From NCBI GenBank assembly GCA_038496445.1, contig JALMLS010000015.1, forward strand, positions 620,001-684,000: a stretch of DNA of 64,000 bases, given 5' to 3'. This stretch comes from Trichosphaerium sp. ATCC 40318. Its lineage: Eukaryota; Protista; Tubulinea. Made by a program: the position numbers and the translations under genes. This document shows, in pieces, positions 10,481 to 13,501 of the stretch (position 1 is its first letter; each line of letters begins with the position of its first letter). The notes under the pieces were generated by a model. It saw nothing but the letters and a program-made list of their open reading frames with translations, was not told the origin of the DNA and did not search any database.

Positions 10481-10676
10481 GTTATAATTTAATATCTTGT
10501 TGGATGGCACTCGTATTATTAATGCTACTACCTAACTAATTTATGTTACTTTGGAAATGAGGTTGTTATCATATAGTCTATAAATTAAAAAACGCTAGAA
10601 AAAGAAAAAGGACCAATGCAAGTGTGGTATGCGTTGTTGTGGCCATTTTAGTTTGCAATGACATTTTTGTATTTTC

Positions 10677-10685
10677 ATACCACAA
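10677..10685 (+). promoter_or_regulatory. Candidate snRNA upstream element ATACCACAA (mirror copy 13360-13368, minus strand)
   Basis: About 59 nt upstream of the U2 start; similar in position and sequence to the Dictyostelium upstream sequence element WCCCAYAA. Confidence 0.4.
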
Positions 10686-10735
10686 TTAAAAATATGTGTT
10701 GCATGATAAAGCATGTTCAAATGCACCTAATAAGC

Positions 10736-10793
10736 AACCTTCTCGGCCTTTTGGCTAAGATCAAGTGTAGTATCTGTTCTATTCAGTTTAATC
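10736..10793 (+). pseudogene. 3'-truncated U2 snRNA copy
   Basis: AACCTTCTCGGCCTTTTGGCTAAGATCAAGTGTAGTATCTGTTCTATTCAGTTTAATC is identical to the full copy, then breaks off before the Sm site. Confidence 0.85.
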
Positions 10794-11488
10794 GATCTTA
10801 GCCAACCATCTTAAAACGAAAAATCCATAAAATCTCACCTGCTTCCTGTTGATGCACTACACCAACCGGACATTCAAGACCAGTATGCAGCTTCTCTTTT
10901 TCTAACGCATGCTCTATCAGAGTGACATCCACATTGACTAGTGCATACAACTTCACTATTAACTAATAAAAGTACAAAGGCATAGGTGATTAATCTAACA
11001 AAGATACTGGCATGAATATCCAACTTTATGTACTTTTTCATAATTCAGAAATTTAAGAATCAATCAAGCAAGCCACAGCGAGTTCTAAAATGAGTTAGCT
11101 TGTTACTGTGTATTCACTCCTAAAAACAATGTTAACAATTTAAGGTCCAGAAGATGTTGAGATTCCTGTGTGACCATGTAATTATCGACAACCGTCTAAT
11201 TGAGAAAAAATCGGTACAAATAAGTGAAATTTACACTTTGAGCTCAATGAAGTTCAAACTCGAGTAACTACAATGAGCGTCTAGTATAAAAACATAAATA
11301 CGACAATCTTTGTGTGCGCCTCTGTGCGAAAAACATAAAGTTGAAATAATTGGGTGCCATTAATGTGAAATGCGGTGCTAAAAATAAACTATTAAATATA
11401 TTTCAGTGAACAAAGTAAAATTAATAGAGTCAACAAACGCCACCCATTAAACACATACGCTACCTATTCCTCACAAGTTTAAGCTGGA

Positions 11489-12265
11489 ATGGTTGACTAC
11501 AAAATTATCGTAGTTGGCCCTGCAGGGGTTGGAAAATCAGCAACAACATTACAATTTATTAAAACCATATTTCTTCAAGAATACGACTCAATCGAAGACA
11601 ATTCGTGAGCACGGAGCTTTTTTTAACGTTTTAAAAGTCTAAAACAGTTACAAAACTTAACGCTCACCCACGCTTTAAGGTATTCCAAGCAAGCCACCAT
11701 AGACAAAAAACCTGCAATATTTGAAGTTCTAGACACAACAGAAACTGACGACCACTGGAACCAGAAAGACCTGGTAATTAAATAAATTGTTTTAGGTTGG
11801 ATCAATCTAACAGGTTGTAGTGCATTCGAGTCGCTCATGGTATTATTTTAATGTACAGCATCACAGACAGAGGTTCATTTGAAAAGATGCAAGGCTTATT
11901 TGACAGGGTTTACAGGTAACTGAGCTAAACTCTCTTGCCTACTATTTTCGCAACACAGTTTCATGAGCTGTTACACATATGACAACTTTGTTGTTTTATT
12001 ACATCCATAACACTAAATATTGTTTGATAGAGTAAAAGAATTGAACCCAGACAAAATTCCTATTGTACTTGTAGGAAATAAAGTAGACTTGGAAGAAGAA
12101 GATAGACAAGTAACCACAAAAGAAGGAATCAAACTTGCACAAAAGAATGAATGTTTATTTGTTGAAGCATCTGCCAAAACACGTGTCAATGTTGATGAAC
12201 AGTTTTATGATCTTGTTAGAGAAATTCGTACCTTAGATAGGCAACGGGGATGTATTGTAATGTGA
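11489..12265 (+). CDS. Divergent Ras-family GTPase, 4 exons
   Basis: [31 protein letters not shown]; switch regions altered (EYDSIED, DTTETD). Confidence 0.88.
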
Positions 12266-12974
12266 TTAATAAAGTTACTTACGAAACTATAGAAGTTCCA
12301 ACCATACATAGGGCATGCCATAGCAAAAAAAATACTGTTTATCGTTTGACTATGTAATGCAACGTTTAGACTATTCAACGAGCATGTACATTTGTTATTC
12401 ACCGTGTAAAGGGCTATCTTTCCATTCACTTATCACTCACAAACAAAAACAACTGCGGCTGTAGGTACCACTGGTAAACTTACACTTAGATGAGTTTTGA
12501 TAAAACTCTTGTATGGTTCTCTTTTGTTTAGCGTTTCTAAATGTTTGAATGATCCAGTTGTGCTCAAACAAACTTGAAGTGAGTTTGAAGTAGTTGTGAC
12601 CGCTGGTAGTATCATGAGCAAGAGAAGTAATATTCCGAGTCTAATCACGTGTTTCGAAAATAGAAAAATAATGATTGATTTTTAATACCTTTCATTCAGA
12701 ACTGGATACTGTATTGTACAAAGAAATATAATCCCAAAGTCCAATCATGGGTTTCGAAAACTAAAATGAAGTAATGTGAATTGTTTGGCTACGAGCAACT
12801 TTAGTATCAACGGAATTTTTGGCGTGCAAAATTTTAGTCGCACTTACACCCCACGATAGTGACTGCTTTATGCTACTGTATGTACATGTATTCATTTTCT
12901 GTATTATAAGTGAGAAGCATAATTCTTGAGGCCAATCAGGTGATTGGAAAATGAAACGAGAAAAGTGTGATTTG

Positions 12975-13055
12975 TTGGCTAAGATCAGGTGTAGTATCAC
13001 CGAAATTTAGCAAATGTTTTGACTTATAAAATTTTTTGGTAAATTTATACCATAA
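12975..13055 (+). ncRNA. U2-like snRNA variant candidate (5' end may extend to ~12910)
   Basis: TTGGCTAAGATCAGGTGTAGTATC matches U2 at 23/24; Sm-type AAAATTTTTTGG at 13028-13039 followed by hairpin TGGTA..TACCA. Confidence 0.5.
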
Positions 13056-13114
13056 GATAGCGAGTGCTTTCCCAGTCTGAATGTGGTTGTTGTTTTTCTT
13101 TATTGTTTAGAGAA

Positions 13115-13309
13115 GGGGTTGACCTCATCTGGCGGGTAGTGTAAGGCCTGACAGATCATTGCAGGGGTGGAAAGGCAAGCCAGTCCGACAATCCCCTGCC
13201 CCCGGAAAAAATTCGCTTAATCTTGTGGGGGACATTCGTCCCCCATTCAGAGATTAAACTGAATAGAACAGATACTACACTTGATCTTAGCCAAAAGGCC
13301 GAGAAGGTT
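13115..13309 (-). ncRNA. U2: U2 spliceosomal snRNA (full length, ~195 nt)
   Basis: Conserved 5' domain with GUAGUA branch-recognition sequence, stems IIa/IIb (GGGGGAC GAAU GUCCCCC), U-rich Sm site, stem III, stem IV loop CCUUACACUACC. Confidence 0.95.
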
Positions 13310-13501
13310 GCTTATTAGGTGCATTTGAACATGCTTTATCATGCAACACATATTTTTAATTGTGGTATGAAAATACAAAAATGTCATTGCAAACTAAAAT
13401 GGCCACAACAACGCATACCACACTTGCATTGGTCCTTTTTCTTTTTCTAGCGTTTTTTAATTTATAGAATATATGATAACAACCTCATTTCCAAAATAAC
13501 A
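13252..13501. repeat. Right arm of the 250-bp inverted repeat
   Basis: See 10544-10793. Confidence 0.92.

Follow-up and report, generated by a model that had tools for sequence, protein, structure and literature searches.

The U2-like block that lies tail-to-tail with the canonical U2 snRNA gene of the window (the whole stretch of 64,000 nucleotides of Trichosphaerium sp. DNA analysed here, C9:620001-684000, from an assembly of 70.3 Mb with 35-41% GC) is a real and conserved element. Judged from the sequences, it is specific to this lineage and represents an inverted copy of U2 nt 17-40 within the ~175-bp 3' flank of the class-A U2 genes; with modest confidence we regard a role as cis-acting anti-U2 element as the likeliest. 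An earlier, sequence-only reading had described a full U2 gene converging on a + strand element with a U6-pairing and branch-recognition block that differs from U2 by a single A>G change. All strings quoted in it were found where it had placed them, and both the gene and the block were confirmed (Table 1).

Table 1. Positions in the window of the class-A U2 gene, its 3' flank and the related features
Feature	Position	Strand	Remarks
Canonical class-A U2 snRNA gene, 198 nt	13113-13310	-	Rfam U2, 150.7 bits
3' box core AAAGAAAAA of the U2 gene	13093-13101	-	+12 to +20
Candidate stem-loop in the U2 3' trailer	13051-13083	-	+30 to +62, between 3' box and block
Sm-like motif AAAATTTTTTGG	13028-13039	+	Kept in 7 of 8 copies; C155 has TTTTTTCAG
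Inverted copy of U2 nt 17-40 (the block)	12975-12998	+	TTGGCTAAGATCAGGTGTAGTATC; 23/24 identical, A30>G
Second-best conserved stretch, directly after the antisense block	12961-12973	-	Reads AAATCACACTTTT; T run of 4-9 in all copies
Conserved 3'-flank unit, accompanies every class-A U2 gene	12945-13112	-	Mean column identity 87% among 8 copies
Palindrome CCAATCA GG TGATTGG, CCAATCAGGTGATTGG	12932-12947	.	This form common only to the C9 window and C395
Older tandem copy of the element, decayed	12738-12928	+	Block 12785-12808 with 5/24 changes; contains CCCCACGA (12849-12856)
Truncated U2 unit	10544-10802 (to 10829)	+	Promoter and U2 nt 1-58, joined to GATCTTAGCCAA

The class-A U2 gene, which we take to match human U2 over its first ~42 nt, is nearly identical in six loci, where it varies by one internal substitution and the first base, and it has its promoter element, ACCACAAT, at -56. 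The block is the reverse complement of 13271-13294 in this gene except for A30>G; on the - strand its 24 nt are antisense to the 5' functional region of U2, with a C facing U2 A30. The genome was searched twice independently, with the region and with the 24-mer as query, and what the sequence-only reading had proposed to look for, a family, does exist. When one additional mismatch at most was allowed, the 24-mer in its A>G form was present at exactly eight sites of the 70-Mb genome (one each in C9, C395, C117 and C155, two each in C13 and C169), every one of them behind a class-A U2, and the reversed control pattern gave no match in the same search. The distance from the 3' end of U2 to the block is 106-139 nt (+106 to +139) in all eight units and the orientation is constant, the ~175-nt flank with the block adjoining the U2 end tail-to-tail each time. 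Six of these U2 neighbours are intact genes and two are promoter-swapped pseudogenes; no block was found genome-wide away from a U2 copy. The three groups of copies are homologous from ~12945, about 30 nt before the block, to the end of U2. Sequence farther upstream is common only to the window and C395, because the whole segment 10794-13112 is duplicated in C395 at 85-89%.

Within this flank the block stands out by its constancy. Its core, CTAAGATCAGGTGTAGTATC, is invariant in the eight paralogues, a run of 20 nt with zero changes, whereas 50 substitution steps were counted over the 133 ungapped flank columns of the eight-copy alignment (~0.38 per column; by parsimony on the evident tree of the eight copies). 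At the flank rate 20 unchanged columns have a Poisson probability of about 4e-4, and the next longest invariant run in the alignment is 9 nt. The G at the sole position differing from U2 is kept in all eight copies, therefore copying from the U2 genes cannot account for the constancy of the block. A neutral pseudogene fragment should decay at the rate of its surroundings, and this one, with 0 changes in 20 columns against 0.38 per column, did not. By this comparison the block is held constant by selection. The changes at the block edge (in C395, C117 and C155) are few and reduce pairing with U2 instead of maintaining it. The tandem copy, farther from U2, did decay in its block, which ties the constraint to the U2-proximal position. 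The view of the sequence-only reading that modules were selectively retained rather than left over from random decay thus holds for the family of eight, the 20 unchanged nucleotides and the Sm-like motif in seven of eight copies, but it does not extend to a minimal U2 gene.

It has to be considered that the element has no function at all, and is a relic: part of U2 (roughly nt 14-108) would long ago have been duplicated in inverted orientation and then copied along with the U2 unit; the constancy of the block would then be due to chance or to an unrecognised mutational effect. Like snRNA pseudogene fragments, the block is a partial, promoterless copy beside rearranged U2 pieces, and the loci are indeed rich in such rearrangements (truncated units, promoter-swapped pseudogenes, inverted repeats). 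The sequence CCATAAGAT-AGCGAGTGCTTTCC matches U2 nt 82-106 at 20 of 23 positions (P about 0.04 for the window copy), a weak collinear similarity. Unlike such fragments, however, the block is undecayed in eight paralogues with diverged surroundings and keeps a constant place relative to U2. The improbability of 20 invariant columns at the flank rate speaks against a relic, as does the fact that the tandem sister copy decayed, and homology past the block is insignificant for the other copies or by profile. When the flank past the block was aligned locally with U2, P values of 0.04-0.08 were reached by some copies, and with class A alone; a global test was significant for the window copy only, and a profile search for such homology found no match; flank homology to U2 beyond the block is suggestive. 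We consider a relic rather unlikely, though it is the likeliest of the rival explanations.

The exact sequence of the block is conserved in a strand-neutral way, which would also be expected if the 24-mer acted as double-stranded DNA, bound either by a factor that also recognises the U2 genes or, as a half-site, by a recombinase. In the latter case the block would be the inverted half-site of a U2-targeting mobile element. U2-specific mobile elements include the Utopia non-LTR retrotransposons, which insert at nt 38/39 and occur in Amoebozoa (PMC4640811), and the Dada DNA transposons (PMC3706591). The block resembles their target half-sites in being a U2 fragment whose homology stops at nt 40, beside the Utopia target nt 38/39 (PMC4640811). 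It forms an inverted repeat with nt 17-40 of the gene itself, 272 bp apart, and truncated U2 units have the same inverted piece at their junctions. Here, however, no element lies alongside, the block is inverted relative to the neighbouring U2, and the copies with swapped promoters are deletion pseudogenes and not insertion junctions. No integrase-type recombinase was found close to the eight loci (genome-wide, PF00589 gave a single weak match, on C12), and the loci inspected had no long ORFs and no reverse transcriptase. The interval between the truncated U2 and the block consists of ordinary genes, a Ras-family gene in the window, or of unrelated DNA in C155. Taking these points together, we think a DNA-level site improbable.

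Two candidates for traces of mobile elements were rejected. C169:77239 and C395:14180, considered as Utopia insertion junctions, are instead promoter-swapped pseudogenes with an 11-nt internal deletion, and the supposed mobile element at C395:5.7-14.2 kb is mostly a repeat with a period of 15 nt. This long array, at C395:6600-11500 (L077 1600-6500), reads roughly ACTGAAGCNCCAACA and would encode a Thr/Glu/Ala/Pro-rich pentapeptide repeat interrupted by stops.

The rearranged U2 pieces around the block deserve description in their own right. The truncated unit of the window is matched by the Rfam U2 model at 10735-10829 (+) with 61.4 bits, and the sequence to which it is joined, GATCTTAGCCAA, is the reverse complement of U2 nt 17-28. 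The 250 nt at 10544-10793, made up of the promoter and U2 nt 1-58, form one arm of an inverted repeat, 99% complementary to 13252-13501, and the unit at 10544-10802 probably derives from a second, convergent U2 unit. Further truncated units with intact promoter were seen at C155:65989-66109, C395:5644-5740 and C395:25074-25170. In all of these units, that of the window included, the reverse complement of nt 17-28 follows immediately on U2 nt 1-58 (or 1-48), which makes a 12-bp stem whose loop contains the branch-recognition sequence; an A-rich stretch similar to a 3' box comes next. The junction is common to C9 and C155 and thus points to one old event, probably a deletion by which a U2 gene became fused to the antisense block downstream of it. 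Should there be a compact U2-like RNA with a real promoter in these loci, the truncated units are the best candidates.

In three other copies (C169:77239-77419, C395:14180-14360 and C395:16598-16621) the U2 promoter and the first ~8 nt are replaced by one unrelated sequence with TATATAA, and two of the three also lack nt 21-31 and the branch-recognition sequence. In C395 the replacement is found in each arm of the inverted repeat, a sign that the two arms may have undergone gene conversion. A Ras-family small GTPase gene lies at ~11400-12265 (+) of the window and separates the truncated U2 from the element. Its last exon, at 12020-12265, ends in the CAAX box CIVM; the family has more than 50 matches in the genome, and in C155 the corresponding interval is unrelated DNA. 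A metagenome scan with the 20-nt core gave two matches. One was a plant-like head-to-head U2 pair on contig Ga0214490_1000472 (L079 3740-3930), one copy of which has A30>G and which is unrelated to the present genome, the other a U2 pseudogene in an animal-looking contig (bird or reptile LINE-like).

The signals of snRNA genes used in this work were derived from 46 U1, U2, U4 and U5 genes of the same genome. A promoter element begins 53-62 nt upstream of the RNA start in nearly all of them; it consists of (A/C)CCAC and a subsequent A/T-rich run. In loci L055-L076 and L001-L030 the fuller consensus is (A/T)A(A/C)CCAC(A/C/T)(A/T)T, then a T/A run, at -53 to -62, and it resembles the upstream sequence element of plants. 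The 3' box lies 5-25 nt past the gene end; the core found in class-A U2, AAAGAAAAA, is present also in the U1, U5 and class-B U2 genes, and U4 has the variant AAAAAAGAAAAAAA.

Measured against these signals, the element does not look like a gene. The sequence-only reading had seen in it a minimal + strand variant of U2, an alternative or decoy snRNP. With U2 snRNA (Rfam RF00004) the block has 23 of 24 bases in common, including the U6-pairing segment and the branch-recognition GUAGUA, but stem I, stem-loops IIa, IIb, III and IV, the promoter element and the 3' box are lacking. The Rfam U2 covariance model gave the candidate 12.8 bits (E=3.9 for 12970-13093, + strand) against a gathering score of 46, and with a permissive threshold both strands of 12600-13112 yielded chance-level Rfam matches only. 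On the promoter matrix CCCCACGA, put forward as an upstream element, reaches 4.4 bits, whereas real sites reach 10.5-18.6 bits, and ~0.4 sites with such a score are expected by chance per 175 nt. Neither C395, the closest paralogue, nor any of the other six copies has it, and in the window it falls within the decayed tandem copy, where it aligns with the ACCATAAGA segment of the candidate itself. The other seven copies have no promoter element at a fixed distance from the block, and there is no AAAGAAAAA on the + strand in 12991-13500, where the sole 3' box is that of the U2 gene on the - strand.

The GGUG/CACC hairpin, said to present the branch-site reader in its loop, is present in the window copy but fully kept in only three of the eight; its 3' arm reads CACC, CACG, CTCC or CAAC among the copies, and compensation is impossible. 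The + strand folds no better than shuffled sequences (z = -0.40), and the consensus fold of the eight-copy alignment (-13.3 kcal/mol, covariation term +0.24) has no covariation support. The palindrome, thought to replace stem I, turned out to be a degenerate variant of a genome-wide AATCACGTGATT (E-box-like) motif; the motif has 86 matches, the reversed control 16. The palindromic form AATCACGTGATT(GGAAAA), which is over-represented, is found at 12641-12660 and 12932-12951 and is likely a general transcription-factor site.

Of the Sm site and its hairpins, the motif, in the form AAAAUUUUUUGG, is kept in seven of the eight copies, while the flanking stems, though present in the window copy, are unconserved and without covariation. 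RAU4-7GR motifs occur at ~0.2 per kb per strand in the window, so ~0.02 would be expected in the 115 nt after the block. A compact + strand RNA of the Sm class, combining the branch-recognition sequence with this site, would thus account for the motif and for the constancy of the block. Yet the Rfam score, the promoter, the 3' box, the fold, the missing stem I and the conservation of the hairpins are all against it, the copies are homologous from only ~30 nt before the block, the element is never separate from U2, and the transcript would run antisense into U2. The minimal U2 gene is unsupported, and we rate such an RNA as very unlikely indeed.

The possibility of a C/D or H/ACA guide RNA for U2 was rejected. 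Apart from an unrelated snR75-like match, no Rfam snoRNA or scaRNA matched either strand at E values up to 10, and the pocket and box geometry of the - strand hairpin, inspected by eye, is unfit for U2. A T>C change yields CUGA on the - strand, but, also by eye, without C box or terminal stem. The snR75-like C/D-box match, at 12609-12707 (+) with 16.5 bits and E=0.47, has a possible GTATC/GATAC terminal stem; its boxes are non-canonical and it is probably due to chance.

As the element lacks the signals of an independent gene, it more likely serves to control U2 transcripts than as a miniature U2. Our working hypothesis, which we hold tentatively, is that the block belongs to the U2 transcription unit as a cis-acting anti-U2 element and works on the U2-sense (-) strand. 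Transcription past the 3' box is assumed by analogy with Pol II snRNA genes elsewhere. A polymerase passing the 3' box at +12 to +20 would transcribe a trailer containing the stem-loop at +30 to +62 and the antisense block at +106 to +139. The target of the latter would be the 3' half of stem I, the U6-pairing segment and the branch-point recognition sequence of the same U2, so that the read-through transcript is predicted to close into a 13+10-bp panhandle. This would hide the active 5' end of U2 (nt 17-40) and create a double-stranded segment, which could mark the unprocessed U2 for a dsRNA-specific nuclease or keep it from the spliceosome. It must be noted that we infer three things here: that transcription extends through the block, that the panhandle forms in vivo, and what follows from it.

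Several observations are consistent with the panhandle. In the predicted fold of U2 with its flank, nt 17-40 pair with the block in both the minimum-energy and the centroid structure. In each of the six intact units the pair probability was 0.94 or higher, and an energy of -35.3 kcal/mol was calculated in silico for the duplex. As would be expected of a cis element of the trailer, the antisense block is on the sense strand, downstream of the mature 3' end and in a fixed place, and its duplex is predicted to be stable. Three facts speak against the panhandle: the fixed change puts an A-C mismatch in the middle of the duplex, the few changes at the block edge reduce the pairing, and the two copies behind U2 pseudogenes, which have no 5' partner, still hold the block, although these two may simply be recent.

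The candidate stem-loop between 3' box and block shows some strand preference as well. Among the copies 76 of 80 cells of the stem are paired on the U2-sense strand, compared with 65 of 80 on the opposite strand. The changes comprise one A-U/C-G double change and four wobble-compatible single changes, and the A>G and C>U changes retain G-U pairs on the U2-sense strand only. The bias rests on ~eight substitution events, and P about 0.03 is a rough estimate.

A self-complementary flank is not common to the snRNA genes of this genome. The self-complementarity score of the flank is 20-23 for class-A U2 and 7-11 for U1, U4, U5 and U2 classes B and C. As no other class of snRNA gene compared here has it, it is a specific feature of class-A U2, and its absence from U2 classes B and C, U1, U4 and U5 means that it cannot be a general requirement.

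The U2 genes of this genome fall in three divergent classes, A, B and C (loci L001-L030). Class A is 198 nt long, has the promoter element at -56 and is followed by the 3' box. In class B, of 214-219 nt, the promoter element is at -59, a 3' box is present and some of the copies read GGCTTTGATC. Class C, of ~202 nt, has the promoter element at -62 together with GATAAAAGG near -29, reads GTAGTAAAAG past the branch-recognition sequence and ends in a T run, so that it looks Pol III-like.

If the antisense strand is the active one, it might also be produced as a separate molecule. A small - strand anti-U2 RNA gene would start ~50-60 nt after the AACCAC(A/C)TT found at +25, continue through the antisense body and end at a T run. 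AACCAC(A/C)TT is present in seven of the eight copies (C155 has AGCCACCTT), a TATAAAT-like sequence lies downstream of it, the conserved AAATCACACTTTT with its T run directly follows the block, and the dead tandem copy lost both motif and block. On the matrix of real promoters, however, the motif scores at chance level, -3.7 to 4.3 bits against 10.5-18.6, and AACCACATT at +25 was for this reason rejected as a - strand promoter. Moreover, its spacing to the TATA-like sequence is 38 nt, compared with 26 in class A and 33 in class C (counted by hand), the TATA-like box is altered in C117 and C155, and the C13 copies have a T4 run ahead of the block. Such a gene is in our opinion highly unlikely. 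Whether released as a trailer fragment or made as its own small RNA, the block could also be the working part of an anti-U2 RNA that pairs in trans with nt 17-40. It may then restrain or chaperone the U6-pairing and branch-recognition region, by analogy with what U4 does for U6. We regard action in trans as quite improbable.

Returning to the cis-acting anti-U2 element, it is useful to compare it with known systems. In yeast the RNase III Rnt1 cuts stem-loops in the 3' trailers of U1, U2, U4 and U5. The block is similar to these stem-loops in being a sense-strand cis element past the mature 3' end that would provide dsRNA on extended precursors. It differs from them in that the Rnt1 stem is local to the trailer, whereas here the partner strand is the functional 5' region within the mature RNA, hence cutting would destroy the transcript rather than mature it. 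Dictyostelium reportedly expresses variant snRNAs, U2 variants among them; the base composition of the present genome, with its 35-41% GC, is unlike that of Dictyostelium. Variant snRNAs retain the whole fold and their own promoter. The cis elements that are known behind snRNA genes are short 3' boxes or local stem-loops, and we found no published description of a sequence exactly antisense to the catalytic-core-forming 5' end of the RNA it follows, preserved intact behind all copies of the main U2 gene.

What the element means for the biology of this amoeba depends on which of the readings is true. If it is inert, it is a caution that a U2-like block, an Sm-like motif and hairpins coming together in one copy can mimic a small RNA gene. 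If the block works in trans, every main U2 gene would have its own regulator, and this would be a new regulator of the spliceosome. If, on the other hand, read-through transcripts are what it acts on, unprocessed U2 would be silenced by a built-in quality control.
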